Program-made: the position numbers and the translations under genes
Notes under the pieces: generated by a model
Seen by the model: the letters and a program-made list of their open reading frames with translations, nothing else
The model's database searches: none
What the model was told of the DNA's origin: nothing
Shown here: positions 36,057 to 62,057 of the stretch, piece by piece
How the letters are laid out: the number at the start of each line of letters is the position of its first letter
How positions within the stretch are numbered: the first letter of the stretch is position 1
NCBI GenBank assembly: GCA_038087875.1
Contig: JAXLNO010003343.1
Coordinates: forward strand, 1-64,000
DNA: 64,000 nt
Source of the DNA: Malacoraja senta
Taxonomy: Eukaryota
Direction: 5' to 3'

Positions 36057-36164
36057 CTCTCCTCTTTTTTCTCCACCAAACAATTACTGCCAAGACAATA
36101 GCCAGAAATATCAGCACACACACGGCAATAAGGCCTATGTGCCTGTCTTTCTTCCTATTTCCTT
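36057..36164 (-). CDS. Transmembrane exon of the MHC class I-like gene
   Basis: TTTTTCAG acceptor, 108 nt, phase 1/1, (E)GNRKKDRHIGLIAVCVLIFLAIVLAVIVWWRKKRR, donor G|GTAAGA; hydrophobic helix with basic stop-transfer, 2.7 kb downstream of alpha3. Confidence 0.85.
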
Positions 36165-37929
36165 CTGAAAAATAAGAATGCATAATTTTACAAATCAATT
36201 GTTAAGCTGTGCAGCTAAATAGATGGGCACTGTCTGAAGACTTCAGGGTGAAGAAGGGTCTCGACCCGAAATGCCACCTATTCCTTTTCTCCAGAGATGT
36301 TACCTGACCGCTGAGTTACTCCAGCATTTTGTGTCTATATTTGGCGCTTTTCAAGGTATATAAGATGATATGGTGTTTTGAATCACGGAGTTCTGCAGCA
36401 TGGCAAAGGGACAATATCTGTTCTGTACAACTCTATGATCTATGGCACCATCACAGCCACAACTTAATTCAAGAAAGAAGGTGAATTGAAAGCAGAAAGC
36501 TTTAACCCTATATAAACTAACATTTGTTTTGGGGAAAATGCTGGATTCCTTTCAATAATGGCAGAACATTTAAGTAATAACAAAACAATAAAGTGCATTA
36601 TCAGGGCATTAACAGGAAAATTGTAGAAAGAAAGAGATGCAGATACTGATTTACACAAAAGCTTTAGTTTAGTTTATTGTCACATGTATTGAGGTACAGT
36701 GAAAAGCTTTTGTTACGTGCTAACCAGTCAGTGGAAAGAATATACATGATAGACACAAAATGCTGGAGTAACTCAAGGGAACAGGCAGCATCTCTGGCGA
36801 ACATGGATTCATCACCTATTCCTTTTCTCCAGAGATGCTGGCTGACCAGCTGAGTTATTCAAGCAATTTGTGTCCATCTTCGGTGTAAACCAGCATTTGC
36901 AGTTTCTTCTTACACATGGACAGGTGACGTTTCATTTTGGGACCCTTCTTCAAACTTTGTTTGAGAAATTGATTAGAATTCTTTGAAAATGCAACAGGAA
37001 CCCGTAGACAATGTATATTCGAGCAGCAGGTGTGAAAAGCCTAAAATTCATAAACAAAATGATGGAAAAGCAGAATAGGTAACAAAATTCAAATGAGAAA
37101 CAAAAGAAATACAATATATTGTAGAGATCCAAACGTCATGAACAAATCAATGTTTTTAAAGAAATACAGTTTTGGCCCACTCGCGTTTAGTAAGGACTTG
37201 AGCAAAGTTCCTGCCATTGTAATCGGGCACACCAGTTGACTGGCGATTAACTCATCACCAACTCCCACCAAAACCCTGTCACTCACGTGATAGTCCCAGC
37301 TCCCCTGACGAGGGTTCTAGCAATAAGTGGCCTGACCACCAGATGTCGCCAGAATATCTGGATTTTCATAAGATATCTGATCAAGTGATGCAAAGGCACA
37401 TGGCTTATGACATTGGGGGTAATAATTAGCATGAATGGAAAAACAATTAAGAGCAAGCAGAGAGTTGTCTTAAAGGAGTGTTCAGGTTGGGAAACTGCAA
37501 CTGCAGGTTGGGAATCAATGCAAGAAAGTGAACTACTTATCGTTGGTATTAAGAGCAGATGAAGGGACTGATGGCGCTGTAGCCTAGATTGCTGATGATA
37601 CATAGATAGGTTGGAAATTAAGTTCTGGGGTATGTCAACAGTCTTCAGAGTGAAACATCAGATTCCTTATTTGTGCATTGTTCGAGGGAATCTTCAAAAG
37701 TGAACATTTGTGTAGGTTCGTGCAGCATACTTGGAATCAAACTACTACGATCGCTGTTTGTCAGGCAGTTATATTTTTTGTTGCTGAATCTGTAACTTGC
37801 GTCAGGGAACTTACTTCATTAGGTTTTGTTTTATTAATGCCAGATGTTTCAAAATACAGAGCAAAGGTTTGTTTTGTATGCTACCCAAATTATAAAACTA
37901 TACATAAATACAAACTCAAAAACAATAGA

Positions 37930-38520
37930 TAGAGCAAAGAGGAGGATACAGAGTACAGAATATAGTTCTCAGCATTGTAACGCATCAGTTCCATAGACAA
38001 TGTGCAATGAGGTTGAGGTGAATCAGGCATTGAACCTACATTATGGAAGGACCCTTCCGAAGCCTGTTAACAGATGGAAAGGGGGTGTTCCTGAGTCTGG
38101 CAGTGTATACTTTCAACTTTCTGTACCTATTGCCTGATGGGAGCAGGAAGGAGGAATGACCGGGGTGGGATAAGTCTCATTTTCGAAGGCAACCTGGTGT
38201 AGACTGAATCAATAGTGGGAAGTCTGGTCTGTGTGATGATCTTTAACTCTTTGTATATTCTTGCAGTCTTGGGCAGTGCAGTTCCCAAATCAAGATGTGA
38301 TGCAACCCAACAACATGCTTTCTCTAGCAGCATCTATAGATGTTTGCTAGAGTCACCAGAGACATGATGAATATTCTCAGTCTCCTGAGGAAGTAGAGGT
38401 GTCGGTGTGCCTCCTTGGCTATGTGGCCAGTCCATGACCGAATATTGGATAAATTCATGCCAAGGAACATGAAGCTCTCAATCATTTCCACTTCGGACCA
38501 TTGATTTGGATTGGGGCATG
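37930..38520 (-). mobile_element. Decayed Rex1-like LINE 3' fragment
   Basis: Minus strand carries LPSG(N)RYRK-like and LLRRLRIF-like remnants of the Rex1 C-terminus. Confidence 0.6.
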
Positions 38521-38848
38521 TACTCCCCCAGTGCCTTGCTGTTAATCACATCATGAGGAAAGATTCATTTTTTATTTAAACATACCTTTCATAGATTTCA
38601 GTTCCACCACTGAGAATCTCAAATACTCCTTCCTTATATATTAGTTATTTATTTACTTTTAATAAATGTTCTGTTGACAAAGTCTTCTGCTCATGTGGAG
38701 AGTGGGTGCTGATTACGTGATTACTTAGAGCAACACCACTAAACAAAGAAAGTTTAAGCATCTTGGAATATGGGATGTATTCATGATGATTAAAATGGAA
38801 ACAACAGAAGATAATGATTATCTATGAAAGAATATTTAACGTTCTTAC

Positions 38849-39115
38849 CCCAGATGATGGTCTTCCCACCGGGCAGGCTGCTGTGATCGACATGACAGGA
38901 ATACTGTTTCCCATCATACGGATCATACTCAAGGACAGACCTTAGATGATATGTTCCATCGTTGTTGGGTGTGACCCCAGAAGATTTTGTCTCAGAGACA
39001 TGTTGACCATTCTGCAACCAGCTGACATTGATGGCCGGTGGGTAAAATCCAAACACAGTGCAGTACAGGACTGAATGATCATCAGGGCGGGCAGCGAGAG
39101 TGACCTCAGGGGAAA
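38849..39115 (-). CDS. MHC class I alpha3 (Ig C1-set) exon
   Basis: TCTTGTAG acceptor, 267 nt, phase 1/1, open: SPEVTL...LYCTVFGFYPPAINVSWLQNG...PNNDGTYHL...YSCHVDHSSL...IW; donor G|GTAAGA. Confidence 0.92.
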
Positions 39116-40417
39116 CTACAAGACAGTAAGATGGTTATTTTCATCTTCAGTAAAACTTGCACAGTCACCCACCACAAAATATTCTTCAGTCCACTACAAC
39201 AACCAAGTTACTGTCCACATCTGCTCCATTTTGCCTCTTTCGTCACCATCAACCAACCACGTGGTTTAAAAGGGATCGCACGCTCCCTGTTAAGACAGTA
39301 CACAAGAAAGTTTGAAAGTACGTACCATTAAATTCAGGAACAGCTTCTTCCCCACTGTTATTGGACTACTGAATGGTTCTCATGTAAGATAAGATGTTGC
39401 CCTGATCTTCCAACCAATCTCATTGTGATCCTTGCAACTCTTTTTGATCTGCACTTTCTCTGTAACTGTAATGCTATGATATTGTAACCCGATATTCTGC
39501 ACTCTGAGAATTTTTCTCTTTGCACTGTTCTACTTGTGGATGGCTTGATTGCACATGTGTAGTATGATCTGATTGGATAACACACAGACAAACTTTTGAC
39601 TATATCACAGTTCATGTGACAATAATAAACTAATACCAACGGCAAATCTTTTCACTAGGGCATATTATTGACAATAATAAATAATTGACAAGTTACGAAA
39701 TGAGGGTCAATTGGGGAGGGGACAAGCTTAAAATTGGCAGTATTTTCACTCCTCTTCAATAAGAGATAAAAGAGACCAGTCATTTGTTTACAAAATCTCT
39801 TTTTGCAGAGTGTGGTCATTCTCTGGCGCCAGAGATTTGTGAAGACAAAATCATTGGAAGCATTTAATGTGGCGGTAGTTAACTTAATTAAACTTAAATT
39901 GGAGAACTGAGTGCAATGAGGAACTGACATCGAACAGGAGTTGATGCCTGAGGAACGTCAGCCATGGTCATATTGAATGGTGGGCAGGTTAGAGGACCAA
40001 ATGGCTTACTCGGAAACTTAATAACCGAGGAGAAAATCAGGCTTCTGAATGATCGTTCCATAAGCTACGGTACTGTCCAATTGACCACTACCCCATTACA
40101 GACAGTGGACTTTGTTTATAGAACTATGCAGGAAGGAACTGTAGATGCTGGTTTAAACCGCAGATAGACACAAAATGCTAGAGTAACTCAACGGGTCAGG
40201 CAGCATCTCTGGAGAGAAGGAATGTGTCACGTTTCGTGTCGAAACACTTATCTAATGGAACTGCTGTGCTACATTGCTGAGAACTACATGCCACACTCTG
40301 TACCTTCCCCTTTGCTCTACCTACAGTTCTTGAGTTTGATGATCATATATATGTATTTTGTTACCTCATCCAATTGGATAGCATGCAAAACAAAGCTTTA
40401 CACTCTACCTCAGTACA

Positions 40418-40712
40418 TGGGCAGCACAGTGGCGCAGAGGGAAAGTTGCTGCCTTACAGTACCACAGACCAAAGTTCAATCCTGACAATGGGTGCTGTCT
40501 ATATAGAGTTCATACATTCTCCCTGTGACCATGTGAGTTATCTCCGGGTGCTACAGTTCCGTCACATTCAAAGACGTGCAGGTTTGTAAGTTTTTGGGCT
40601 TCTGTAAATTGTCCCTAGTGTGTAGGATAGAACTAATATTTGGGTGGTCGTTAGTCAGCACAGGTTCAGTGGGCCAAAAGGCCTATTTTCATGCTGTACC
40701 TCGAAACTAAAC
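40418..40712 (+). mobile_element. V-SINE
   Basis: GGGCAGCACAGTGGCGCAG head, V-domain, (CTAAA) tail. Confidence 0.75.
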
Positions 40713-40750
40713 GTGACAATAATAAACCGAAACTTATCCCTGTGCCTATC

Positions 40751-40799
40751 TGTAGATTAGTGTCACTCATACTGTGGCTCCGCCCACAGGCTTATTAGA

Positions 40800-40845
<46 letters not shown>

Positions 40846-40958
40846 AGACTGGTAGTAAGCAAGCTGAGAAGAAAGCACCTTGTGTTTCCTCTGCAGAGTT
40901 ACTAATAAAAGACTATGGATTCTAACCACTATGTGTGAGTTTGATCATTCTTCCAACA
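40751..40958 (+). mobile_element. Solo LTR (208 bp), BEL/Pao- or Gypsy-like
   Basis: TGT...ACA termini, exact 5-bp TSD CTATC (40746-40750, 40959-40963), AATAAA 40904-40909, internal (CT)n. Confidence 0.75.
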
Positions 40959-41769
40959 CTATCTCTTGTGTTGTTACGTCTCTGGAACTAAGTGGTAGCT
41001 GCGCTTAACTTTGTTGTAGCATAACTGTTTATGCAGAACAATTCATGAAAAAAAGTCTAAAAAGGATTAAAAAACAAGTGATTCCAGCATGTTGAAAGAT
41101 AATTGGGACTGATACGTAATGGGTGGCACTGCGACACAGTTCCAGTGACGAGGGTTTGATCACAATCTTGAAACAGAAAAACTTAAACTGAGGCACGTGC
41201 CTCTACTTCATCAATTCAGTGCTGTTATGGCACTGGGCTTTAACATGAGAAAATGTGAAATTGGGTATTTCCTTAGGGCAAAATCAGACTTCTCAGAGAC
41301 TTGGAAGCTGCAAGATAGTCCTGGAATGTGGTGGATCACTGCGTGCTGTTCCAGAAGAGGACGAATTGTACTTATGTACAGTATGACTTGACTGGGGAGA
41401 ATGCAGAACAACCATTTCACTGCAGATAGACACAAAAAGATGGAGTAACTCAGCGGGACAGGCAGCATCTCTGGAGAGAAGGGACGGGGTGTCCAGCATC
41501 TGCTGTTCCATCCAAACCATTTCACTGGATCTCTGCATGCATGAAACTAAACAGAGTTATATAAAATGCAGCACATACTGCAGTACTCAAGTAGGTCAGG
41601 CTGTCCTGATTTTGCAGGTGGATAACTTTACTGTAATTTAAAAAAAACACAAAAATGTGCAGGTGTAACTCAGTGGCTCAGGCAGCATCTGGAAGACATG
41701 GTTACGTAATGTTTCAGCTTGGTGTCCTTCTTCATACTTCTTGCATCTGTTCTTTCTGACTTCAACTTA

Positions 41770-42285
41770 ACAGTTGAAAAGGACCGTCGTGAGCCCCACC
41801 ACGGGGCGTGGACTTACCATCGGAGCGGATCCCTTGCCTGGGATCGCTCCCAACGCGGCCTGCGAACTTACCATCAAGGGCTCCCAGTCTCGGGAGAGGC
41901 TAGTCGGGAGCTCCAACGCCACAGAAGGTTCGTCCAGCCCCGACGCGAGGTTCGATCGCCCGGTGCAGGGGAGCTGACAATCCCCCCGATGCGGGAGCTG
42001 ATCACCTCGACGCGGAGGGCCCGAAAGCCGCCGGCTACGGGACTCAAGACCGTCCGTTCAACGGGGGGCTCGAGGCCCCCGACCAAGGAAGAACAAGGGA
42101 AGGACTTGGAACTTTATTTTCGCCTTCCATCACAGTGAGGAATGTGTAGGAGTCACTATGATGGATGTTTATGTCAAAATGTGTTTTTGAGTCTGTTGCT
42201 TTTTTAAATTGTATGACTGACCTGGCCAGTGAATTTTACTACACCAATTGGTGTATGTAACAATAAATGAACATGAACTTATGAA
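41770..42285 (+). mobile_element. GC-rich retroposon family, truncated copy C
   Basis: Shares the GCCTTCCATCACAG...GATGGATG hairpin and 3' organisation with copies A and B. Confidence 0.65.
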
Positions 42286-42984
42286 ATGACCAGTTCTTTT
42301 ATCGACAGGGAATACAACTTGTTGAACGTGGAATTGAGTGTGAAAGGCTGCAACATGTCAAGGTAGAAGCTGAGTTGTTGGTCCTCAAGGTTACTTTCAC
42401 CCTTGTTATCCTAGTGTAAGAGGTACAGATGGATGGATCATGGTGGGTGTTGAATGGAGAATTAAAGTGGCACGAATTAGGAATCTTAGAAAGTCCCATG
42501 GATTGAATGCGGGTTCTCCAGAACGCAGCCACTCAATTTGTTTCATTGATGCGATGTGGAAGATTACGTCATGAAAACCAAATGCAGTAGATTTGACTGG
42601 AAGTGCAAGTGTTTCACGCTGTTTCACTTTGAAGAACTGCCTGGGTCTATGGACAGTAGGAAGGGAAGAGGTAAATGGATAGATGTTGCATGCACCAAGA
42701 CAGGAAAGTAGAGGAAAGTTGTGGGGATAGTAGACAGACCAGGGAGCGAAAAAGGGAATGACTACTTCAAGATATAGAATGGGGATCAGGGCAGGAGGGG
42801 GGGGGAGAAATGGATTGACTAATTGAATCAGATTTAAACTGGGAGTAAGTATTCAACATGGAGGCTGGAGGAGTGAAAAACTCTGCCCTGTCCAATGAGA
42901 ATATATAGAACATAGAACAGTACAAGAACAGGACTTTCAGCCTGCAATGTCCATGTCGAACAGGATACCAAGTTAAACTAAGGC

Positions 42985-43280
42985 AACACAGTGGCACAGT
43001 GATAGAATGGCTGTCTTACAGCATTAGAGACCCGGGTTCGATCCTGACTAGAGTGCTGTCTGGACGGAGTTTGTACGTTCTCTCTGTCACCCTGTGGGTT
43101 TTCTCTGGGGGCTACGGTTTCCTCCCAAATACAAAAGACGTGCAGGTTTGTAGGTTAATTGGCTTCTGTAAATTGTCCCTAGCTTGTAGGACAAAAATAG
43201 TGAATGGGCAATTGCTGGTCAGTGCAGACTCAGTGGCCCAAAGATCCTGTTTCCATACTCTATCTCTAAACTAAACCAAA
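42985..43280 (+). mobile_element. V-SINE
   Basis: GGGTTCGATCC B-box, V-domain, CTAAACTAAA tail. Confidence 0.8.
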
Positions 43281-43851
43281 ACTGATTTCCACTGCCTGCA
43301 TGTGATCCATATCCTTGTATTCGCTGCACATTCACAAGCCTGTCCAAAACCTTCTTAAGCACCATTATCATGTCTTCCTCTACCACCACTCCTGGTAGCG
43401 CATTCTAGGTATCAAGCTCTCTCTGTGCAAAAAAACACTTGACCTGCACAACTCGTGTAAATTTTGCCCTTCGAAGCTTAATGCTGTGCTCTTTTGAGAT
43501 GTGTGATAGACATGCAATCCCATTAGGGGCTGTCAACTGTGGTCAAGAAAATCCATGGTTAACTAATATGAAAGACATCAATTACACTTTCTCCCTGTCA
43601 AACAGGGATGTAATGCTGAGGTTCTATAAGGCGCCGGTCAGGCCACATTTGGAGCATTGTGAGCAATTTTGGGCACCATATCTGAGGAAGGATGTGCTGG
43701 CTCTGGAGAGTGTCCAGAGGAGGTGTCCAAGAATGATCCCAGGAATGAATGGGTTAACATATAATGACCATTTGATGGCAGTGGGCCTGTACTCGCTGGA
43801 GTTTAGAAGAATAAGGGGGGACCTCATTGAATCATACAAAATAGTGAAAGA

Positions 43852-45285
43852 CTGTTTGCCTTTTGAAATTGGTTAGATTATGTTTGCTCCCACAAAATTG
43901 CATTAAAAAACCTATAGTGAAAATTCTATAATATATAGTGGTATACGAATTTGGAAACAATTAAAAAAGACTTTAAAATTGGATAATTTATCACTCTGTC
44001 TCCCCATTATAAACAACCCTTTATTCAAACCCTCCATGTTGGATAAAGGCTTTACACAATGGAAAAATTAAGGAATTAAAAAGATGGGACATCTTTATAG
44101 GAAAGGCACTTTTCTTTAATTTCAGGGGTTACAACAGATTTACGGACCACACTCAAATAACTTTTTCAGATATTTACAAATTAGAGATTACATTAAATCA
44201 AATACACAAGATTACAGAACTAGGGAACCAGAAATCCTTGATGAATGTTTGAATAAACATCCTAATAACATCAACAGGGGGCGCCGTCGAATATGGCTGC
44301 CCCGCCAGCAGCTGTTAGTTTTTTCACTCTTTTTTTAATTTTTAGTTAGTTGAGAGTGTTGGTTGGAGATCTTTTAGTCTTTTTATGTGGGGGGGGGGGG
44401 TAGGGGGAAGGGGGAAACTATTCTTCTCAGTCCCTACCTGGTCGGAGATGCGGCTTTTCTCCGAGCCGTATCTTCGCCCCTTCCTCGCGGCCTACGGGCA
44501 GGCTGGAGCGGCGTTTTCCTGCCGGGACCGGCCAGGACTTCAGCTTCGGCGGCGGCACAGCGCTGAAGCACCATCGCGGAGCGGGCGATGCCTAACCCGG
44601 GTCGCCGTGCAGTAAGCTCCGGAGTGCTGTGACGGCCAGCACTAACATCGCAGAGCTGCGGTCTGCGGTCAGTGGAGCTTCCAGCGGCGCTGAGCTTGGA
44701 ACACCGCGGAGCCTGGGATCTGACGACGAGGTCGACAGAGTCGGGGCATCGACCAGCGCGGCTCGTGGACTTCGGGAGCCGCGGTCTACTGGGAGGAGGC
44801 AGCCGCTCCAGACACTCCGGGCCGCTGAGAGTGTTCACCCGACGCCGGAGCTTCATCATCCGGCGAGAGGGCCTGAGGCATCGGGCTGCCGTAGCGGCGA
44901 CTGCAGAGGCCTCAATAGGCCCCGACTATGGGTGAACTGGGGATGGGACTGGACTTTGCTGCCTTCCCCCACAGTGGGAACCATTGTGGGGGGATGTTTT
45001 TATGTTTACTGTTAAATTCTTTGTTGTAATCTTTATTTGTGTGCTGCATGGCAAGTCAAATTCCTATCAACTCAGTTGACATGGCAATAAACTTCTTGAA
45101 TCTTGAATCTTGAATCTTAATACAGAAAAATTAATATCTCATATTTATAATACCCTCTTAGATAGTGAGGTCCCGCCGACGGATTTATATAGACACACAT
45201 GGGAAAATGAATTAGGCCAACCCATAACGAAAGATATTTGGGACGAAAGTCTACAATATATACATCAATGCTCGTTAAATGCCAG
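43852..45285 (+). mobile_element. L1 ORF2 C-terminal fragment (distinct subfamily), split by retroposon copy B
   Basis: N..F.PS..D..F..W, FFRYLQIRDY, HPN|TEKLISHIYNTLL, WENELG, CSLNAR. Confidence 0.8.
44268..45117 (+). mobile_element. ~850-bp GC-rich non-autonomous retroposon, copy B
   Basis: 5-bp TSD TAATA (44263-44267, 45118-45122); (TTGAATC)n tail; the L1 frame resumes exactly after the TSD. Confidence 0.8.
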
Positions 45286-45304
45286 ACATGCCTGTTTGCT
45301 GGCA

Positions 45305-45480
45305 TGCGTCTTCCACCCATGGAAGACTTGACCCAGGACGGCCATTCAAGACGATGTTGAAGACGTTGATGGAAGACGCATGTGTAGAGACAAAAGAGGA
45401 GCTTGCCAGCTGCATGGAGGACAGAGATGTGTGGTGCGTCCGTCACCGTGCCCGTTGGAAACCAGCACGGCACTAATGTT
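45305..45480 (+). mobile_element. RTE-clade LINE 3' fragment
   Basis: THGRLDPGRPFKT...EDACVETKEELASCMEDRDVW resembles the RTE ORF C-terminus. Confidence 0.6.
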
Positions 45481-45629
45481 TTCAACGATTATTATTATCA
45501 TCCACTACACCCCCTCTGTCCTGGGGATTTATCCACATTTCTCTTCAAGTGATCCAACATCTCCTTCTTACTTAACTTCAAAGTGTCCCTGCATGTTAGC
45601 ATTCTCCACATTGATTCTCCATGTGTAAG

Positions 45630-46440
45630 AAAGAACTGCAGATGCTGCAGATGTTAAAATCGTAGAGAGACACAAAATGCTGGGGTAACTCAGCGGGTCA
45701 GGCAGCTTCCCTGGAGAGATGGAATGGGCATTGTTTTGGGTCGAGACCCTTCTTCAGACTGATGTCAGGGGAGGGACAAAGATAGAATGTCGGCGGAGAC
45801 AGTAAGACTGGTGGCAGAATTGGGAAGGGGGAGGGGATGGAGAGAGAAATCAAGGGCTATCGAAAGTTATAGAAGTCAATGTTCATACCGCTGGAGTATA
45901 GACTACCCAAGCGAAATATGGGGTGCTGTTCCTCCAATTTGGGCTGGGCCTCACTCTGACAATGGAGGAGGCCCAGGACAGAAAGGTCAGATTGGGAATG
46001 GGAGGGGGAGTTGAAGTGCTGAGCCACCGGGAGATCGGGTAGGGTAAGACAGACTGAGGGGAAGTGTTCAGCAAAACGATCGCCGAGCCTGCGCTTGGTC
46101 TCACTGATGTAGAGAAGTTGACAACTGAAACAGCGGATACAGTAGATGAGGTTGGAAGAGGTGCAAGTGAACTTCTGCCTCACCTGGAAAGACTTTAGGT
46201 CCTTGGACGGAGTCGAGGGGGGACGTAAAGTGACAGGTGTTGCATCTCCTGCGGTTGCAGGGGAAAGTATCCGGAGAGCAGGTGGTTTGGGTGTGAAGGG
46301 ACGAGTTGACCAGGGAGTTTCGGAGGGAACGGTCTCTGCGGAAAGCAGAAAGGGGTGGAGATGGGAAGATGTGACCAGTAGTGGGATCCCGTTGGAGGTG
46401 GCAAAAATGTTGGAGGATTTTATGATGTACTTACTATTAA
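45630..46440 (-). mobile_element. Penelope-like element 3' part (GIY-YIG endonuclease and terminal repeat)
   Basis: SNLIYCIRC...LYISETKRRLGDRFAEH...VAQHFN...EEQHPIFRLGSL..GMNIDF, followed by a CTGAAGAAGGGTCTCGACCC tail. Confidence 0.9.
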
Positions 46441-46574
46441 TGGTCCTTACTATTCTACATGTCTTCCTTGGTGAAACCAAACCTCGCCTATATCCACAAA
46501 CTCCAAGCACATATTCCCTTCTATATCCTTAAGCAATCCACCTTTTGCTGCAATGGTTGCCTCGCCAACAGTAT

Positions 46575-47245
46575 GTCTGTCCCTTCCTTCCTTGTGTCTG
46601 TTTTGTACGTGTTAAATGTATATTCTTTAGTGTTCTTTAGCTTGTTTTGGGGGTGGGGGTTGGGGGAGTTGTGGGAAACTTTTCCTAATCTCTTACCTCG
46701 ACGTAGATGTGATATTTTCTGTATCGTATCTCCGTCCACAATGCGGCCTAACATTGATGAATGGCGGCCTTTGCTAGAGATCGACCGGGAGATCCATCGC
46801 AGGAGCCTGTGGACTTACCATCATGGAGCTCGCAATCCCTGTCGGGGATCGACTTTAGGGCTCCAACTGTGAGAGCCTGCAAGACTTTAACATCGCGGAG
46901 CCCGTGGTCCCCGGTCGAGACCAACATCCGGGACCTCCAAGCCGCAGGAGTTTCGACCGCTCCGACCGCTCCGACGCGGGAGTTTCGATTCCCCAATGGG
47001 GGTTTCGACCACCGACTGCAGATTGTTTGACTGCCCCGACCGTGGGAGATAAAGAGGAAGGAGATTAGACTTTATTGCCTTCTATCACAGTGAGGAACGT
47101 GCGGGCTCCTCTGTTGTGGATGTTTATGTTAACTTTTACGTTATTGTGTGTCTTGTTGCTTTCTTTTTGTATGGTGTATGGTAGTCTGCATTTCAATGTA
47201 CCTTAATTGGTACATGTGACAATAAACTAACCATGAAACCTTGAA
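46575..47245 (+). mobile_element. GC-rich retroposon family, copy D
   Basis: T-rich then G-run 5' part, GC-rich core, GCCTTCTATCACAG motif and AATAAA-containing tail as in A and B. Confidence 0.65.
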
Positions 47246-50285: not shown

Positions 50286-50810
50286 NNNNNNNNNNNNNNN
50301 NNNNNNNNNNNNNNNNNNNNNNNNNNNNNNNNNNNNNNNNNNNNNNNNNNNNNNNNNNNNNNNNNNNNNNNNNNNNNNNNNNNNNNNNNNNNNNNNNNNN
50401 NNNNNNNNNNNNNNNNNNNNNNNNNNNNNNNNNNNNNNNNNNNNNNNNNNNNNNNNNNNNNNNNNNNNNNNNNNNNNNNNNNNNNNNNNNNNNNNNNNNN
50501 NNNNNNNNNNNNNNNNNNNNNNNNNNNNNNNNNNNNNNNNNNNNNNNNNNNNNNNNNNNNNNNNNNNNNNNNNNNNNNNNNNNNNNNNNNNNNNNNNNNN
50601 NNNNNNNNNNNNNNNNNNNNNNNNNNNNNNNNNNNNNNNNNNNNNNNNNNNNNNNNNNNNNNNNNNNNNNNNNNNNNNNNNNNNNNNNNNNNNNNNNNNN
50701 NNNNNNNNNNNNNNNNNNNNNNNNNNNNNNNNNNNNNNNNNNNNNNNNNNNNNNNNNNNNNNNNNNNNNNNNNNNNNNNNNNNNNNNNNNNNNNNNNNNN
50801 NNNNNNNNNT
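50286..50810. other. Assembly gap; other gaps at 2536-2754, 5575-5879, 8189-8358 and 31724-31861
   Basis: Runs of N. Confidence 1.
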
Positions 50811-51124: not shown

Positions 51125-52300
51125 TAACTCTGCTGGCTCCTAGTCCCCCTCCCCCTACAGGGAAGATCAATCAGTAGTGATGACTCTGCTGGGTCCTAGT
51201 GCTCCCCCCCCCCCCGCTATAGGGCAGATCCATCGGTCAGCTGGCTCCTAGTCCCCCTCCCCCTACAGGGAAGATCAATCAGTAGTGATGACTCTGCTGG
51301 GTCCTAGTGCTCCCCCCCCTATAGGGCAGATCCATCGGTCAGCTGGGTCCTAGTGCTCCCCCTCCCCCTACAGGGAAGATCAATCAGTAGTGATGACTCT
51401 GCTGGGTCCTAGTGCTCCCCCCCCCCTATAGGGCAGATCCATCGGTCAGCTGGGTCCTAGTGCTCTCCCTCCTCCTGCAGGGAAGATCAATCAGTAGTGA
51501 TGACTCTGCTGGGTCCTAGTGCTCCCCCCCCCTATAGGGCAGATCCATCGGTCAGCTGGGTCCTAGTGCTCTCCCTCCTCCTGCAGGGAAGATCCATCAG
51601 TAGTGATGACTCTGCTGGGTCCTAGTTCTCCCCCCCCCCCCACTATAGGGCAGATCCATCGGTCAGTTGGGTCCTAGTGCCCTCCTCCTGCAGGGAAGAT
51701 CAATCAGTAGTGATGACTCTGCTGGGTCCTAGTGCTCCCCCCCCCCACTATAGGGCAGATCCATCGGTCAGTTGGGTCCTAGTGCTCTCCCTCCTCCTGC
51801 AGGGAAGATGCATCAGTAGTGATGACTCTGCTGGGTCCTAGTGCTCCCCCCCACTATAGGGCAGATCCATCAGTCAGTTGGGTCCTAGTGCTCCCCCCCC
51901 CACTATAGGGCAGATCCATCGGTCAGCAGGGTCCTAGTGCTCTCCTCCTGCAGGGAGATCCATCAGTAGTGATGACTCTGTTGGGTCCTAGTGCTCCCCC
52001 CCACTATAGGGCAGATCCATCGGTCAGCTGGGTCCTAGTGCTCTCCCTCCTCCTGCAGGGAAGATGCATCAGTAGTGATGACTCTGCTGGGTCCTAGTGC
52101 TCCCCCCCCACTATAGGGCAGATCCATCAGTCAGTTGGGTCCTAGTGCCCTCCTCCTGCAGGGAGATCCATCAGTAGTGATGACTCTGTTGGGTCCTAGT
52201 GCTCTCCCTCCTCCTGCAGGAAGATCCATCAGTAGTGATGACTCTGTTGGGACCTAGTGCTCTCCCTCCTCCTACAGGGAAGATCCATCAGTAGTGATAG
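51125..52300. repeat. Higher-order satellite of alternating ~57-bp and ~46-bp related subunits
   Basis: A: CTCCTCCTGCAGGGAAGATCCATCAGTAGTGATGACTCTGCTGGGTCCTAGTG; B: CTCCCCCCACTATAGGGCAGATCCATCGGTCAGCTGGGTCCTAGTG; mostly in AB order. Confidence 0.92.
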
Positions 52301-53295
52301 GTCTTCCCCTTCCCTCTCTTTTAATCAGGTTACCCCGACCACACACCACCAGTTAAAATTCCCTGCTTTATTATGGATCACAATTTCTACGAATTACAAT
52401 ATATAAAACTCCGAAGGCACAAAATGTGAATGCTAGTATTCACAAAATATATGCAAACATTTTCTGAGATTTCAGGAAATTCCCACCCCCCCTCCTTCAG
52501 CTCCCGGGCTCCTATTGGACTCTGGGCCCGCATACGATGTACCCCCTGCACCCCCCTCTCATAGGCCCTGTGTATACGTAAGCGCATTCGTGAACAAAAT
52601 ACTGTGTGTGGTATATACCTTTGTTAGGTTCCTAAAAATAGGCTCAACAAATTGATGTTCTTTACAACCCCTTCATGACCCCCGGAAACCCCCCAAACGA
52701 CCCCCATGGGGGTCACGACCCCCAGGTTAAGAACCACTGCTTTGGAGATACAGTGCTGAAACAGGCCCTTCAGCCCATACTAGGGACAATTTACATTTAC
52801 ACCAAGCCAATTTACCTACATCTCAGAGAAAAGCCACACAGGTTACGGGGAGAACATGCAAACTCCGTACAGTCACCACTCGTAGTCGGGTTCAAACCAG
52901 GGTCTCTGGTGCTGCAAGGCAGCAACTCGTGTAAGGCCACGATCTCTTGGCTTTGCTTATAGTTATTATCATGTTTTATCTTCTATTGTGTTCTTTTTGC
53001 TTATTGCATATAAACAAATATAAAGCTGCACATAAGGTTGGATCTTTTCGAGGCCCGAGCTGCCCCATCTTTTACCACAAAAGTGCTTCCTATATTTAGA
53101 GAAACATAGATATAATAAGGCTCACCCCTCATGTGCATTGAAGGCTTTCTCTAAAATATGGAGACCATTAAGCTGTTCACTGCCAAGTTTATTTTTCACT
53201 ATTGGCCATGACCCCTAGTGTACTCGGCAGTGGCATTGAACAGGTTAAAGATATCCAGTGATGTGTAGCTGCGCTACCTTTCCTTGGTATTCTTA

Positions 53296-53969
53296 AGGGC
53301 CTGTCCCACTTACGTGTCCTTGGCACACAAATTATGCGACCTTGTGGTCGCGTTGAAGCGCACGGGCATCGTATGGCCGCGCGGGGCCGGTCCCACTTGG
53401 AAGCGCGGAGGGGTATGGAGTTGTGCGCGACATCGCGCGGGGCTCCGATAATTTTGTAGTGAACGAAATCTTCGCGCGCCAACGGCCTGTCGCGGAACTG
53501 ACGGCCAAAGTGGGACAGGCCCAAGACCCTGGCGCGACGCAAAGTCTCACTTTCAACAGGAGCAGAAGGAGGCAAACGATCGCCGAACTCGGCCTGGGGC
53601 TCACGGCCGTTGAGGTCCGGATCCGCCCCCACTTCTACTCCCAGAGCGGGGCCAAGAAAATTGAAGATAGACACAAAATGTCAGCGGGACCGGCAGCATC
53701 TCTGGAGAGAAGCAATGGGTGACGTTTCGGGTCAAGACCCTTCTTTTCAGACTGAAGAAGAGTCTCGACATGAAACGTCACCCATTGCTTCTCTCCAGAG
53801 ATGCTGCCGGTCCCACTGGCTTACTCCAGCTTTGTGTCCATCTTCAAATAATGTGTCACACGCTCCAGACGGCTGTGCGTACGCATGTAATCGCGCCCGA
53901 CCTTCGTCAGACCATCGCGGCTCAACGCGTAATTTGCGTTCCAAGGACACGTAAGTGGGACAGGCCCCT
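53296..53969. mobile_element. PIF/Harbinger-type MITE
   Basis: 27-bp perfect TIR GGGCCTGTCCCACTTACGTGTCCTTGG (53297-53323, 53941-53967); TTA on both flanks (53293-53295, 53970-53972) allowing one extra C. Confidence 0.8.
53661..53847. mobile_element. Palindromic (fold-back) Penelope-terminus-derived element inside the MITE
   Basis: Two inverted copies of the Penelope tail joined at the CTGAAGA motif; outer arms TTGAAGATAGACACAAA / TTTGTGTCCATCTTCAA. Confidence 0.8.
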
Positions 53970-54456
53970 TTACTTAGATGATTCATTCCCTCTGGCATTG
54001 ATTGATGAATCAAAGTGGGGGGGGGGGGGGGGTTGATGGAATTTGTAAGGATTTGCTGAAGTCAGTTTGCTTAAAACTGCTCACTCCTTGAAAAGGAGAG
54101 TCTGTGAACTTTAGCCCAGAGACAAAGAACAGTTTGTGAACTCAAGGTTATAATTGATAAAAATCTAGGCACAACTGTGAACAACAACCCTTTATTAGGA
54201 TGAAGGTAATGAGCTAATGCCAACCATGCCCCTGGGACCAGGAGTAATAAGGAAAGGTCAAAACTTGGATGATGTTTTCATTCCAATAAGAAACTCTACA
54301 AACAATGATAGCTGAATAAAACATAATTATGTTGTATCGATGAAGAGCCTCCTTTTCAAGCTGCTTTCTGCAGTCTTTTAGTTGTTCTGCAGATCCTTTA
54401 CATTCTCTCGTCTTCGTGTTTTCAAGAAACACCACAAATAGCCGAATGTATACTAA

Positions 54457-57400
54457 TTATAGAAACATAGAAAAATAGGCACAGGAGTAGGCCATTCGGC
54501 CATTCGAGCCAGCACCGCCATTCAATATGATCATGCCTGCATCTAGAATCAGTACCCCATTCCTGCTTTTAGAAACATAGACACACAGAAAATAGGTGCA
54601 GGAGTAGGCCATTCGGCCCTTCGAGCCTGCACCGCCATTCAATATGATCATGGCTGACCATCCAACTCAGTATCCTGTACCTCCCTTCTCTCCATACCCC
54701 CTGATCCCTTTAGCCACAAGGGCCACATCTAAATCCCTCTTAAATATAGCCAATGATGTCTCTTATAGGCTGAATAAATGCTATAAAAATGATCTTTTTA
54801 CCACAAATTTTATATCTATTCCAGTCAATACCGATATACTTACCCAAAATGTTTTTTAAAAAATTGGATGCTGATATTATAAATTTTATATGGGACTATA
54901 AATCCCACAGAATCCAAAGAAAACATTTGTGTAAACCTAAGGAATTTGGTGGATTATCACTCCCCAATTTTTTATATTATTACTGGGCCACAAATGTCAA
55001 AAATATGATTCACCTGTTGGACAATTCGGCCCAGCAGGTGGATTGGATAGTAATGGAGAGAGAGGACTGCTCCCCTTTTAACATAGGAGCGATCCTTCTC
55101 TCACCAACAAAAATAAAGAATACAATATATAGTAAAAATCCAATTATTCACAGTACAATTAGAATTTGGAAACAAATAAAATTATTGTTAAAATTAAGAA
55201 ATCTATCACTTCTTTCACCTATAATGAATAATCCTTCGTTTAAACCTTCTATGATAGATAGAGCTTTTATAAATTGGGAAAGAGCAGGAATTAAAACGTT
55301 TGGAGATATGTATGATGACGGAAGTTTTTTAACATTTCACCAATTACAACTTAAATATAACTTGAATAATAATCAATATTTTAAATATTTCCAACTACGT
55401 GACTATTTGAAAAAGTATACACGGGAATATCAAAATATCTCTCCTGACTTATTAGATGGGATAATGAATATAAAAGCGGAATCAGCTAATTTAATATCAT
55501 ACCTATATAATTCCATTTTAAATATAGAAATTCCATCATCGGACGGGATCAGAAGAGAATGGAAACAGGAACTAGCTATAAAAATCTCGAAAGAGAGTTG
55601 GGATAAACATCTATTATATGTGCATAAATGTTCGATTAACGTAAGACATACTCTGATTCAATTTAAAATTTTACATAGATTATATTATTCAAAAGCTAAA
55701 TTAAGTAAATTTTACCCAAATACCTCTGCAAACTGTGATAAATGCCTAGTCCAAGAATCAACTACAGCACATTCTTTTGTTTTTTGTATAAAAGTTCAAA
55801 AATTTTGGAATGAAATTTTTGAAATTTTCACTAAATTATTTTAAATAAAACTGAAACCGAATGCAGAACTGATTATTTTTGGAACAATAGAAGCAAGTTT
55901 GGAGCTGACTTCGTTTCAAAGGAGTTTTCTTAGTTATGGCTTAATAACGGCAAAAAAATTAATACTGAAATTTTGGAAAAATGCTCCTACGCCAACAATA
56001 AAAATGTGGACTTCTAATATGTCGGAATTGTTACATCTAGAAGATATGAGATTCCTCCTAGCAGGTAAACAAGACCAATTCCAAAAGATTTGGTCTCCAT
56101 ATATCGACCTATTACAAACATAGGGTGCAACAAAATGTTGATAATAAATGGTTTTAGGTCCTGGCGAGGGGTGAGTACAGATAAGAAAAAGGCACATCCC
56201 TTTCATATTGTCCTATCTTATTTTCTTTTTTCTCTTTTTTTCTTTTCTTCTTTAACTATTTCTTGTGGTTTAGGTTCACATGTGTGTTCCTGGACCACTT
56301 TTTCATTCACTCACTGACTGTCCTTGCTAGTTCTTTCTATTCTTCTTTTCTATTAAAGTTGAAAAACAGAAGTGGTACAAGAACTGTATAAATTTACGTT
56401 ATTGCAGATTACTGTAATGTAAAATACTTCTAAAAAATAAATAAAAAATAAAAAAATAAAAAATATATATAGCCAATGAACTGGCCTCAACTACATTCTG
56501 TGGCAGAGAATTCCAGAGATTCACCACTCTCTGTGTAAAAAATGTTTTTCTCATCTCAGTCCTAAAAGATTTCCCCTTTATCCTTAAACTGTGACCCCTT
56601 GTTCTGGACTTCCCCAACATCGGGAACAATCTTCCTGCATCTAGCCTGTCCAACCCCTTAAGAATTTTGTAAGTTTCTATAAGATCCCCCCTCAATCTTC
56701 TAAATTCTAGCGAGTACAAGCCGAGTCTATCCAGTCTTTCTTCATATGAAAGTCCTGACATCCCAGGAACCAGTCTGGTGAACCTTCTCTGTACTCCCTC
56801 TATGGCAAGAATGTCCTTCCTCAGATTAGGAGACCAAAACTGTAGACAATACTCCAGGTGTGGTCTCACCAAGACCCTGAACAACTGCAGTAGAACTGCA
56901 GTCTGAAGAAGGGTTTCGGCCCGAAACGTTGCCTATTTCCTTCGCTCCATAGATGCTGCTGCACCCGCTGAGTTTCTCCAGCAATTTTGTGTACCTGCAG
57001 TAGAACCTCCCTGCTCCTATACTCAAATCCTTTTGCTATGAATGCTAACATACCATTCGCTTTCTTCACTGCCTGCTGCACCTGCATGCCTACTTTCAAT
57101 GACTGGTGTACCATGACACCCAGGTCTCGTTGCATCTCCCCTTTTCCTAATCGGCCACCATTCAGGTAATAGTCTACTTTCCTGTTTTTGCCACCAAAGT
57201 GGACACATTTATCAACATTATACTGCACCTGCCTTGCATTTGCCCACTCACCCAGCCTATCCAAGTCACCTTGCAGCCTCCTAGCACCCTCCTCACAGCT
57301 AACACTGCCCCCCAGCTTCGTGTCATCCGCAAACTTGGAGATGTTGCATTCGATTCCCTCGTCCAAATCATTAATATATATTGTAAATAGCTGGGGTCCC

Positions 57401-58210
57401 AGCACTCAGCCTTGCGGTGCCCCACTAGTCACTGACTGCCATTCTGAAAAGGACGCGTTTACTCCTACTCTTTGCTTCCTGTCTGCCAGCCAGTTCTCTA
57501 TCCACATCAATACTGAACCCCCATAACCGTGTGCTTTAAGTTTGTATATTAATCTCTAATGTGGGACCTTGTCGAAAGTCTTCTGAAAGTCCAGATATAA
57601 CACATCCACTGGTTCTCCCTCTACTAGTTACATCCTCGAAAAATTCTATAAGATTCGTCAGACATGATTTACCTTTCATAAATCCATGCTGACTTTGTCC
57701 AATGATTTCACCATTTTCCTAATGTGCTGCTATCCCATCTTTAATAACTGACTCTAGCAGTTTCCCCACTACCGATGTTAGACTAACTGGCCTGTAATCC
57801 CCGTTTTCTCTCTCCCTCCCTTTTTAAAAAGCGGGGTTACATTAGCTACCCTCCAATCCTCAGGAACTACTCCAGAATCTAAAGAGTTTTGAAAAATTAT
57901 CACTAATGCATCCACTATTTCTGGGGCTACTTCCTTAAGTACTCTGGGATGCAGCCTATCTGGCCCTGGGGATTTATCGGCCTTTAATCCATTCAATTTA
58001 CCTAACACCACTTCCCGGCTACCTGGATTTCACTCAGTTCCTCCATCTCATTTGACCCCCGGTCCCCTGCTATTTCCGGCAGTTAATTAAGTCTTCCTTA
58101 GTGAAGACAGAACCAAAGTAGTTATTCAATTGGTCTGCCATGTCCTTGTTCTCCATGATCAATTCACCTGTTTCTGACTGCAAGGGACCTACATTTGTTT
58201 TAACTAATCT
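54457..58210 (-). mobile_element. Large CR1 (HER1-like) LINE remnant, interrupted by L1 (54757-56466) and a Penelope tail (~56890-57000)
   Basis: KADKSPGPDRLHPRVLKE, GPQLFTIYINDL, KFADDTKLGG, VRPHLEYC.QFWSP, LYSLEFRRLRGDL; duplicated (TTTCTATG)-type tail at 54460-54700. Confidence 0.92.
54757..56466 (+). mobile_element. Young 5'-truncated L1 (same subfamily as 32367-32938)
   Basis: 13-bp TSD ATATAGCCAATGA (54744-54756, 56467-56479); 351-aa open ORF2 segment, one stop near 55842, then the C-terminus; A-rich tail. Confidence 0.93.
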
Positions 58211-59189
58211 TTTCCCCCATATCCCTTGATTCCTTTAGCCTTAAGAGCTAAATCTAACTCTCTCTTGAAAGTACGTTGTTTAGATAAGAGCCTTCTTTTC
58301 AAGCTTCTTTCTGCGGTCTTTTAGTTGAGTTTTGCAGGTGCTTTAGTTTGTCTCGTCTTCTCTCTGCTGAATATGTAACAACTACAAGCTGTGAATAACA
58401 AAAAATCCTTGAAAACTAACACTGGACTGCGAGTGTGAGTACAAAGCATGTTCTAATGTGACCCAACTTCAGTCTGAAGTAGGATCCTCACCCGAAATAT
58501 CTGCCTTCCCATGTTCTCCAAAGATGCCGCTTGACCCGTTGAGTTCCTCAGCACTTTGTGTCTGGAGGAAAGCAGCCTCTGCTCTTCCTTTCATCTACAA
58601 TTGTTAAATAGTTCAATCCAGACAATTAGTTCAATTTTACATTGTTGACTAAAATGAGAAACAAGGCAATTCAAGGATAAATAACTGCCCATAATTCCAT
58701 GTGACAGAGAAAGAGGTCTTTCAGCCTCCTGAGCCCACTCAGGAGGCTGAGGGGTGATCATATAGGGGTGCTTAAAATCATGAGGGGGAATTGATAGAGT
58801 GTATGCCCAGAGCCTTTTACCCAGAGAACAAAATTATTCCAACACTAATTTGCCCCAAAACGGATCTTCCTCATTTCTATCAATGCCACAAATCCACCTC
58901 TATTTGCAGCGGTGGCTTAATCTACTAATTCAGCACATTTTGGTATGTGGGAGGAAACTGGAGAACAAACATTGTCACAGGGAGAATGCTTATACTCCAC
59001 ACAGACTGCACTGGAGATGATTGAACCCGGATCACTGGCGCTGTGAGGCAGCAGCGCTCTTTGCTATAAAGCAGTCATAGAGAGTCACACAGCAGGGAAA
59101 CAAGCCCTTTGGCCCAACTTGTCCATGCTAATCAAGATACCCCATTTAAGCTAGTCCCATTTACCCTGGAATCGGTAGACATCATTCAA

Positions 59190-59670
59190 AACGTTTCTCT
59201 CTAGATGTCAGCTGCTCTACATCGGTGAGACCAAGCGCAGGCTTGGCGATCGTTTCGCCAAACGCCTCCGCTCGGTTCGCAACAACCAACCTCATCTCCC
59301 TGTGGATCAGCACTTCAACTCCCCCCTCCCATTCCAAATCCGACCTTTCTACCCTCGGCCTCCTCCATGGCCAGAGTGAGGACCGCCGTAAATTGGAGGA
59401 GCAGCACCTCATATTTCGCTTGGGCAGTTTACACCCCAGCGGTATGAACATTGACCTCTAATTTCAGGTAGTCCCTACTTTCTCCTCCCCTTCTCAGCTC
59501 TCCCTCAGCCCACTGACTCCACCTCTTCCTTTCTTCTTCCTGCCCCCCCCCCATTCCCCCCACCCTCACATCAGTCTGAAGAAGGGTTTTCGGCCCTAAA
59601 CGTTGCCTATTTCCTTCGCTCCAGAGATGCTGCCTCACCCGCTGAGTTTCTCCAGCATTTATATCTACCT
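59190..59670 (+). mobile_element. Penelope-like element 3' fragment
   Basis: LYIGETKRRLGDRFAKRLRSVRNNQP...EEQHLIFRLGSLHPSGMNID followed by the terminal repeat. Confidence 0.88.
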
Positions 59671-61796
59671 ATGCATGTCCCTGTCCATGTGTCTATTAAA
59701 TATTGTTATTGTACCTGCCGCAACTCCATTCTCTGGCAGGTCATTCCATATGCTGACCACTCTCTGAGCACAAAGATTGTCCCAAGTTCCAATTAAATCT
59801 TCCCCCTCTCACATTCAACCCATGTCCTCTGGTTATTTGATTCCCCTTCTCTGGGTAAAAGGCTCTGGGCATACATCTATCAATTCCCCTCATGATTTTA
59901 AGCACCACTATATGATCACCCCTCAGCCTCCTGTGCTCCATGGAATAAAGCCCTGGCTTGCCCAATCTCTCCCTCTTGTTCACACCCTTGAGCCCCGACA
60001 ATATGCTCATAAATCTCATAAACATAACAATGTTGCAGATAATAAGCGCACCATAAATAATGCAAATTAAAAAAATATTTTTGAAGGCAATATGATTCAA
60101 TAAACATGGTTCAATGAATCAGATGATAATGTAATAAATGTCATTCACATGTATTCACATATAATTTGAAAATAATAATAAATATTGCAAGATGTGGAAA
60201 ATTGATAGAAATTATGCCCAGTGCATAATATTTTGATGTATTGTTACCTGTTTGTACCCTCACCCTGTTTTAGTCCAGTTAAAGATTAATAATATAATGT
60301 GTTTAATGTGTAACCGAAGAGGTAACAAAAAGCAATGTTTTCAGCAATAATTAATCATGAATGAATGATACTTTATTGTGACATGTGACAAGTCACAGTG
60401 AAAGTCTTTGTTTTGTAAACCCAACGTATGTCAAGATTCTTCACATAAAGGGCACCGACAAAGTTATAAAGTCTCCCACACCAGGTCCTCCTTTGTCCCC
60501 ACCTCACCATGGTTCCCCCACGCCTGGTCCTGCTTTGTTCAATGGTACACTACGAATGTCATTGAATTAACACAGTAATGGTGATAGGACTTATTGATTT
60601 ACAATATAAAACATGTCCAATTGCAACTTATATGGATATACAAGTGTGGTGCAGATGGATTTGGACAGCTTACTTTACAATTGGTGCCCAAGATAATTTA
60701 GAGATATAGCACGAAAACAGCCCTTAGAGTCCACAGTGACCAGTGATCCACTTTGGCATACAGGCTTGGAGTGTGGGAGGAAACCGGAGCACCCGGGGAA
60801 ATCCCACGCAGGTCACGGGGAGTACGTACAAACTATGTACAGACAGCACCTGAGGCCAGGATCAACCCTGGGTCTCTGGCACTACGGCACCATCACTACG
60901 GCTGAACCACAATGCCATTTAGGTTATCCTTTAAATATTTCACACAACATTTCATTCAAAATTTGTCAATAAAAGTAAAAACAATTGGTGAGGTACGCAA
61001 GGGATTTTAACCATTCAAAAAGCCACCAACATTTTAATGATTTGTAAAATGCTGGAACACACAGCAGGTTCAACAGAACCTATGGAAAGAGAAACAAAAT
61101 TAATGCTTCAGAATTGTGAGAATGTGTAAGTTACAGACAGGAGTGGGAGGCATGGTTGGACATAGCGGGTATCACTAATACGGTAATGACAGGTTTCCAT
61201 GGTGATAAACTGACAATGAAGCCATCAGACAATGGCATTTTTGGTTTTTATTTCACATTTGCAGCATCTGCAGTTCTTAGGTTAGTAACTCAGCATGGAA
61301 ACGGGCCATTCTGCCCACCAATTCCATGCCAACCATCGATCATCTTTCACACTGGTTCTATGTTATCCCAAAATGGACACAAAATGCTGGAGTAAGTCAG
61401 GGGAAACACTCTGTCTGAGGAAGGGTCTTGACCTGAAAAGTCATCCATTCCTTGTATCCAAAGATGCTGCCTGTCCCGCTGAGTTACTCCAGCACATTGT
61501 GCCTATCTTTGCTGTAAACCAGCATCTTCAGTTCCTTCCTACACATCTATGTAATCCCACTTTCCTCACCCATTCTCAGCACACAAGAGTAATTTACAGA
61601 GCCCAATTAACCTACAAACTCTCACGTTTTCAAGATATGGGATGAAACCGGAGCACCTGGAGGAAATATCTGTGTTCACAGGGAGAACATGTAGTCGGGA
61701 TCAAACCTGGGTCTCTGGCACAGCGAGAAATTTCTTTGAGATGTTTTTTTATGAACATTGATCACACTCCAATTGTATTGAAATGAATGAACTAAC

Positions 61797-62057
61797 TTGC
61801 TGTTTCGTTCTGCCTCTGCATCCATTCATCGACTTGCCCTTTGATGATTCCATGGAAACCAGTTTCAGAGACCGTATTTGTTACCCAGTAATTCCTGTCA
61901 AATGCAGCCGCCATCCATTTCTGTCTTGGAACTGTAATGACCATGTTTTTGTCATAATACTGTATCTCACAACCGTCCAGAACACCCACAACACTATATT
62001 CTGGTAGATGAGTACTCCCGTGGTTCAGGGTGTAGTAGTAGATCAGTGTGTGAGGCT
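61797..62057 (-). CDS. MHC class I alpha1 exon (divergent, probably nonclassical)
   Basis: TCTTTGTGTCTAG acceptor, 261 nt, phase 1/1, open: EPHTLIYYYT...PEYSVVGVLDG.EIQYYD...PRQKWM...NYW...MQRQNETA; donor A|GTTAGT; Y7, Y59, R84 equivalents and N86 sequon present. Confidence 0.92.

Follow-up and report, generated by a model that had tools for sequence, protein, structure and literature searches.

A gene of MHC class I type, lying on the minus strand of the 64-kb stretch of Malacoraja senta DNA analysed here (the window), has kept its alpha1, alpha3 and transmembrane exons but carries repeat-derived DNA at the place where its skate relatives have alpha2. Its sequence marks it as one copy of a non-classical MHC class I gene conserved in chondrichthyans, of the lineage represented by chain A of PDB 9ch4. 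It is probably a young defective copy, which arose when alpha2 was deleted or replaced and was then amplified into near-identical copies. The alpha2 exon and ~1.1 kb of its flanks would have been removed and 1,463 bp of transposon-derived DNA put in their place, leaving the other exons and the splice sites intact, so that the gene, if transcribed, would splice alpha1 to alpha3 in frame. Duplication of the alpha2-less form after the deletion would then have produced the many near-identical copies. We infer that the loss of alpha2 is a real biological deletion and not an effect of assembly, and that the amplification came after it. The ligand-binding platform formed by alpha1 and alpha2 is impossible without alpha2, which makes a young null or a pseudogene the likeliest status of the copy, and it appears to have lost its function.

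Exon structure and class I identity

The alpha1 exon (61797..62057; 261 nt, 86 full codons), the alpha3 exon encoding an Ig C1-set domain (38849..39115; 267 nt; Pfam C1-set, E 4.8e-20) and the connecting-peptide/transmembrane exon (36057..36164; 108 nt), which encodes a hydrophobic stretch followed by RKKRR, all lie on the minus strand and have open frames, AG acceptors, GT donors and phase 1/1 borders. Their coordinates reproduce those of a preliminary description of this DNA, which had reported three open, canonically spliced exons, and almost every letter of the splice sites agrees with three skate orthologues. The last coding exon, for the cytoplasmic tail and stop (24982..25022, minus strand), has an intact acceptor, is colinear with the last exons of the Amblyraja radiata and R. 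longicauda loci, and translates as YQNIQPKQNVHC, followed by the stop. The leader exon lies outside the window; orthologue leaders are found 15-32 kb upstream of alpha1. Over the alpha3 region (39016-39224), a contig from one DNA read set (X2) has zero differences from the window. The exon phases predict that direct splicing of alpha1 to alpha3 would stay in frame, as had been proposed, through a junction codon A/TT, with GAAACAGCAA at the end of alpha1 running directly into TTTCCCCTGA of alpha3; in-frame joining of this kind is possible in any class I gene.

Both extracellular domains of the window gene are closest to class I chains. The best PDB match of alpha1 with phmmer is 9ch4_A (E 2.2e-38), one of 46 class I or MR1 chains recovered, and alpha3 best matches residues 182-268 of the same chain (E 2.4e-34). 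The Pfam MHC_I model, which covers alpha1 and alpha2 together, gave no match to alpha1 alone. Compared with a 341-aa A. radiata protein (P0154), alpha1 is ~93% identical, alpha3 is 89-92% identical, and the transmembrane exon differs at 2 of 35 residues. These best matches rule out a class II or W-category alpha chain, which the preliminary description was right to reject. The gene thus has the class I-type alpha1, the C1-set alpha3 and the transmembrane segment of a class I heavy chain, and lacks the alpha2. Its nearest relatives and its orthologous position are those of the 9ch4-type lineage, and the full leader-alpha1-alpha2-alpha3-TM-tail exon set of that lineage is incomplete in the window copy.

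Skate members of the lineage include A. radiata XP_032898133.1, L. erinacea XP_055521885.1 and XP_055486429.1, and R. longicauda XP_078272153.1, with the annotation "class I histocompatibility antigen, F10 alpha chain-like", and R. longicauda has at least 10 paralogues of the gene, with at least 9 counted beside XP_078272153.1. Every relative retrieved has alpha2, encoded by a 93-residue exon in the other members of the 9ch4-type lineage. We name the lineage by its PDB chain; UDA, UEA, UFA and UGA are published names considered as candidates for it. CD1-like UFA/UGA with a crystal structure are covered in a 2025 review (PMC12562908), and their tie to the 9ch4-type lineage is a candidate one only. 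A literature search on 9CH4 returned unrelated papers only.

Probable replacement of alpha2 by repeat-derived DNA

Three kinds of search found no alpha2 exon in the window. Full-length alpha2-bearing relatives, run by tblastn against the 64 kb, recovered alpha1, alpha3 and the transmembrane exon at E 1e-46 to 1e-50 and no alpha2. A profile HMM of 18 alpha2 domains reached a best E of 1.9 against all six-frame fragments of the window, and nhmmer with alpha2 exon DNA gave no exon match there, with an alpha3 control at E 2.6e-106. A separate nhmmer match to alpha2 flank at 57448-57359 (E 3.8e-9) covers intron-flank positions only, lies within a repeated element and was rejected as alpha2. The tblastn and HMM searches that the preliminary description had proposed, with nhmmer in addition, therefore bear out its reading that the interval between alpha1 and alpha3 holds no alpha2 exon.

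Synteny places the loss precisely. The A. radiata (L001), L. erinacea (L002) and R. longicauda (L003) loci run colinear with the window at 85-90% identity. In each of these skates alpha2 sits between two homologous blocks, the first of which breaks off at window 45313 and the second of which begins at 43849. The pre-alpha2 intron block (45313..46441, minus strand) matches L001 51450-52963, L002 52086-53990 and L003 29341-29465, and its homology stops sharply at 45313; its identity to the orthologues is 80-83%, against 88-90% elsewhere, a difference that counts against the reading we prefer. The post-alpha2 intron block (42282..43849, minus strand) starts as sharply at 43849, is homologous to orthologue sequence ~665 bp downstream of alpha2, and matches L002 55413-56942 (89%), L003 30569-31250 (86%) and L001 64753-66228 (90%). 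The breakpoints are 45313/45312 and 43850/43849, and one gap-free contig (31862-50285) carries both alpha2 flanks, the patch between them, alpha3 and the transmembrane exon. Among the X1 and X2 read-set matches listed, neither breakpoint is spanned by a contig; a contig of X1 extends beyond 43849 with ancestral-type letters, which implies that some copy or allele retains the ancestral arrangement.

The patch itself (43850..45312; 1,463 bp) has no similarity to alpha2 in any frame. Its positions 45008-44293 resemble an element found at a non-syntenic place in A. radiata (68% over 746 bp, E 4e-65), the parts at 45279-45098 and 44210-43838 resemble L001 54628-55217 (63-65%), and contig depth over the patch is 10-40x that of neighbouring bins. 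By these resemblances, the interval is dispersed-repeat sequence that has taken the place of alpha2, rather than an exon hidden in a gap. The ancestral interval at this site measures 1,423 bp in L. erinacea. Among the four explanations offered in the preliminary description, a recent alpha2 deletion is the one supported by breakpoints at the syntenic alpha2 site, which the suggested comparison with colinear skate loci mapped to 45313-43849; a composite of two paralogues does not account for them, and an alpha2 concealed in the gap is unlikely.

Constraint and copy number

Changes unique to the window occur at 5 of 636 exon sites and 77 of 2,663 intron sites (Fisher p about 0.001), so that exons changed ~3.7x more slowly than introns on the window lineage, and pairwise dN/dS values are 0.26-0.36. 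The remaining exons were constrained in the past, and their changes are too few to show whether the constraint continues. Taken together, the exon-intron contrast and the dN/dS values indicate that constraint acted on the gene through most of the history of its lineage, in keeping with a recent loss.

Copy number was estimated from assembler word depths in X1 and X2, two DNA read sets whose contigs cover introns and exons equally. Over the gene, the word depths of contigs range from 1,300 to 3,900 in X1 and from 230 to 480 in X2, and the lowest contigs have ~21-30 and ~3; word depths are not themselves copy numbers, and these suggest tens of copies, with the alpha2-less form seemingly amplified. 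Copies differ by ~0.5% over the 6 kb compared, and the share of the window copy's exon words found in X1/X2 is 0.68-0.86. The alpha1-exon ORF, searched against the protein database for copy counting, returned no matches.

Alternative explanations

Two alternatives concern the assembly. The draft has five gaps in the 64 kb, and the preliminary description drew attention to an N run in the intron between alpha1 and alpha3, which is present but ends at 50809, not 50810 (50286..50809); the TSD-bounded transposon said to surround it was not found, nor were repeat copies spanning both gap flanks in the window and the three skate loci. That alpha2 lies within this gap, or that the scaffold joins the alpha1 of one paralogue to the alpha3 and transmembrane exons of another, is very improbable. 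The alpha1 and alpha3 contigs do differ, the gap between them has an estimated length, and the sequence on either side is lineage-specific, so that continuity is not provable from it. However, both alpha2 flanks lie on the alpha3 contig, with the gap 4.97 kb away from the pre-alpha2 block, on its upstream side in gene orientation, and no exon adjoining the gap, which makes an alpha2 in the gap unlikely. A join of two paralogues likewise leaves the loss of alpha2 unexplained, since the deletion falls wholly inside the contig with alpha3 and the transmembrane exon, and would not give alpha2 back to the alpha3-bearing copy. The same C/A-rich low-complexity tract also occurs at both edges of the gap, and window 57725-52826 followed by 46441 onwards keeps the L. 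erinacea order (L002 43909-45663, then 52086 onwards). Somewhat less remote, though still unlikely, is the reading that the true copy has alpha2 and that misfilling, or a chimeric route through repeats, produced the patch. A size-guided gap-filling error would be expected to give lengths as close as 1,463 and 1,423 bp, which a biological deletion would give only by chance; each breakpoint falls within sequence derived from repeats, the patch is high-copy, the X1 contig is of ancestral type beyond 43849, and misjoins come easily in a many-copy family. Against this, a unique alpha2 exon with its flanks should assemble readily, with no cause for substitution by a foreign repeat, and the ancestral element stops at 45313 and is absent from the patch, so that the join did not run through a shared repeat.

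The other alternative accepts the deletion and takes the alpha2-less gene to be functional, as an amplified family encoding a leader-alpha1-alpha3-TM two-domain class I-like chain, for example an HLA-G2-like homodimer, a beta2m-binding decoy or a receptor ligand. We regard this as unlikely. The remaining exons, splice sites and stop are all intact, alpha1 and alpha3 join in frame, exon change on the window lineage is slow, and the alpha2-less form looks multi-copy, intact exons in many copies being what a functional family would also show. Yet with so little divergence between copies, intact frames are expected even without selection, and all of the constraint observed may date from before the deletion. 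The exon-word shares hint that private changes have accumulated in exons no more slowly than in introns, and the A. radiata protein, used as a query against 5.8 billion database proteins, recovered no alpha2-less relative of 188-597 aa. A dead gene can, moreover, ride along in a large segmental amplification, and we likewise doubt that the amplification to tens or more copies was driven by the chain's own function.

Comparison with known systems

That one member of a growing class I family should lose an exon is, taken alone, unremarkable in the evolution of the MHC. The mapped breakpoints answer the question raised by the preliminary description: the gap does not conceal the exon, and the layout of two domains arose secondarily. 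Should the deletion prove common to many alpha2-less copies, it would provide a dated marker of a large and recent segmental amplification in an MHC-linked region of a skate genome, as well as a clean test of whether selection can keep an alpha1-alpha3 class I chain. Were the chain functional, the skate would have a genome-encoded two-domain class I-like family, a germline counterpart of HLA-G2.

The window copy resembles the 9ch4-type chondrichthyan lineage in exon phases, splice sites, transmembrane segment, tail and colinearity with three skate genes, but has repeat DNA where all other members have the 93-residue alpha2 exon. The HLA-G2/G6-type isoforms also join alpha1 in frame to alpha3, followed by the transmembrane segment, and the phase-1 borders of the window exons permit the same junction. 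HLA-G2 is the product of exon 3 skipping, for which a homodimer has been proposed, and its gene keeps alpha2, whereas in the window copy the exon is gone from the DNA and the alpha2-less form is known from the gene alone. Class II and W-category alpha chains share the two-domain ectodomain layout (a distal domain and a C1 domain, then a transmembrane segment), but the two domains of the window gene find their matches in alpha1 and alpha3 of class I chains, and their layout follows from the mapped deletion. The truncated class I pseudogenes of birth-and-death MHC families are similar in that a small, transposon-linked deletion removes one exon in a tandemly expanding family; unlike them, the window copy retains its other exons undamaged, and it is apparently the defective form that underwent amplification.

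Exon organization and class I identity

The gene retains three open, phase 1/1 exons on the minus strand, confirming the alpha2-less layout of the preliminary description: an alpha1 exon of 261 nt (61797-62057; acceptor ...tctag/AG, donor CAA/gttagt), an alpha3 exon of 267 nt (38849-39115) encoding a C1-set domain (E 4.8e-20), and a connecting-peptide/transmembrane (TM) exon of 108 nt (36057-36164). To these we add an open last exon on the same strand (24982-25022), which encodes (D)YQNIQPKQNVHC and then a stop. The splice sites are nearly letter-identical to those of the three orthologues, from Amblyraja radiata (L001), Leucoraja erinacea (L002) and Rhinoraja longicauda (L003).

PDB 9ch4_A is the best solved-chain match of both domains, over residues 3-86 for alpha1 (E 2.2e-38) and residues 182-268 for alpha3 (E 2.4e-34), while classical class I and MR1 chains give much weaker scores for each. 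This shared best match places the alpha1 and alpha3 exon groups in one lineage. The earlier argument against a class II-like identity holds up, as 9ch4_A is a class I chain: both exon groups are class I, not class II.

In the intron after alpha3 (38790-38848), translation continued past the alpha3 donor yields GKNVKYSFIDNHYLLLFPF before reaching a stop. The L. erinacea model XP_055486429.1 (P0157) has this very C-terminus, and its contig stops before the TM exon. The P0157 C-terminus is probably a gene-model artefact; intron retention at this position would yield a soluble form.

Probable loss of alpha2 at the syntenic site

The claim that no alpha2 exon is visible is borne out across the window by three kinds of search. 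By tblastn, four full-length alpha2-bearing relatives (P0001, P0002, P0003, P0006) and the A. radiata relative P0154 gave strong alpha1, alpha3 and TM matches in the window and nothing above noise for alpha2. When 18 alpha2 domains were combined into a profile, its best E against all six-frame window fragments was only 1.9, and nhmmer with the alpha2 exon DNA of three skates found no exon match in the window, with the alpha3 control at E 2.6e-106.

We fetched the three skate loci and mapped their exons. The minus strand of the window is colinear with all of them (88-90% identity to L001 and L002, 85-87% to L003), and in each the alpha2 exon sits between two blocks that the window conserves. 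The upstream block (window 46441-45313) matches L001 51450-52963, L002 52086-53990 and L003 29341-29465, and the downstream block, about 665 bp past alpha2, begins at window 43849 (L002 55413, L003 30569, L001 60342/64753). In the alignments, homology ends abruptly between 45313 and 45312 and restarts as abruptly between 43850 and 43849. The intervening patch is composed of dispersed-repeat sequence with no alpha2 likeness in any of the three gene-strand reading frames: the stretch 45008-44293 resembles an A. radiata element from a non-syntenic site (68% over 746 bp, E 4e-65), a second element is similar to 45279-45098 and 44210-43838 at 63-65%, and short pieces recur inside the window. Since the flanking blocks are conserved and only repeat sequence lies between them, the alpha2 exon and its flanks appear to have been deleted and replaced at the syntenic site, with both breakpoints mapped.

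The upstream block is itself CpG-rich and TE-derived, with only 80-83% identity to the orthologues versus 88-90% elsewhere. Between A. radiata and L. erinacea, too, identity is only 89% from this block through the alpha2 exon, whereas private changes in the alpha3 block amount to just 1-2% in either species.

The assembly gap and neighboring repeats

The preliminary description placed a gap at 50286-50810; the start stands, while the N run ends at 50809. It is intronic, with about 11 kb to the exon on either side, and therefore interrupts no reading frame. That alpha2 is hidden there is very unlikely, as both alpha2 flanks, the patch, alpha3 and TM lie on one gap-free contig (31862-50285), with the N run 4.97 kb upstream (gene orientation) of the pre-alpha2 block; on the mapped breakpoints, alpha2 is most likely missing through deletion and replacement. 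Both edges of the N run carry the same C/A-rich low-complexity sequence, and the order of flanking blocks across it agrees with L. erinacea. Continuity is plausible and stops short of proof, because the surrounding 6.4 kb is lineage-specific and no repeat copy spanning both edges was found in the window or the three skate loci. A minisatellite 320 bp from the N run (51132-52298; unit about 107 bp, about 7-11 copies, 87-93% matches) probably contributed to the difficult assembly of this stretch.

Two further repeats lie nearby. Blocks in 58213-54570 align with a repeated element, at 92-96% identity versus 85-90% in the surrounding orthologous intron. The A. radiata locus holds three copies of it, that of L. 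erinacea two and that of R. longicauda one or two; either unusual conservation or recent activity of the element in all of these skates would account for this. The segment 53297-53967 looks like a MITE-type element, with 42-nt terminal inverted repeats (93% complementary, 587 bp apart) flanking a 64-nt hairpin at 53682-53818.

Constraint and copy number

Compared with the three orthologues, alpha1 plus alpha3 give a pairwise dN/dS of 0.26-0.36, near the values among intact genes, and window-unique substitutions are rarer in exons (5/636 sites) than in aligned introns (77/2,663; odds ratio 0.27, p ~0.001). These values indicate a gene constrained through most of its lineage and do not date the alpha2 loss; with only 3-5 private exon changes, they have no power to detect relaxation after it.

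Among public sequencing runs, X1 and X2 match best, with shares of 0.83-0.86 for alpha1 words and 0.68 for alpha3 words. Over 38916-44915 their contigs cover intron and exon alike, which identifies them as DNA, and depart from the window at roughly 0.5% of positions. Word depths at the border of alpha3 with the intron, and in other parts that do not look repetitive, are 1,300-3,900 (X1) and 230-480 (X2), against lowest contig depths in the same output near 21-30 and near 3; the gene region thus runs at roughly 50-150 times the lowest depths. To our knowledge, single-copy DNA of a Gb-sized genome does not reach such depth in an ordinary whole-genome run. The region therefore probably has tens of copies or more in M. 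senta, a rough estimate, as word depth is not copy number. One X1 contig passes 43849 into letters matching the orthologues' ancestral continuation, so the ancestral arrangement survives in some copy or allele of that individual.

Interpretation and relatives

On balance we favor the view that this gene, which belongs to a multi-copy, non-classical class I lineage, is a member that became defective recently. Misassembly of the patch is improbable; its main warning sign is the near-equal length of the patch (1,463 bp) and the interval lost (1,423 bp in L002). That the gene represents a functional alpha1-alpha3 family is unlikely: amplification alone is no argument for function, since intact reading frames are expected anyway at about 0.5% divergence, and a word-index search of the protein database found no alpha2-less protein of 188-597 aa.

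Relatives were gathered by exhaustive phmmer search with alpha1, cluster look-ups and word-index search. These include the 341-aa A. radiata protein P0154, L. erinacea P0156 and P0157, and orthologues from sawfish, stingrays, manta and many sharks. R. longicauda contributes at least 10 annotated paralogues of at least 90% identity on one 41.5-Mb chromosome (CM130181.1), against a single annotated copy for A. radiata in the same clusters. All relatives retrieved carry a 93-residue alpha2, and P0154 aligns with 9ch4_A over its full length (E 8.6e-118).
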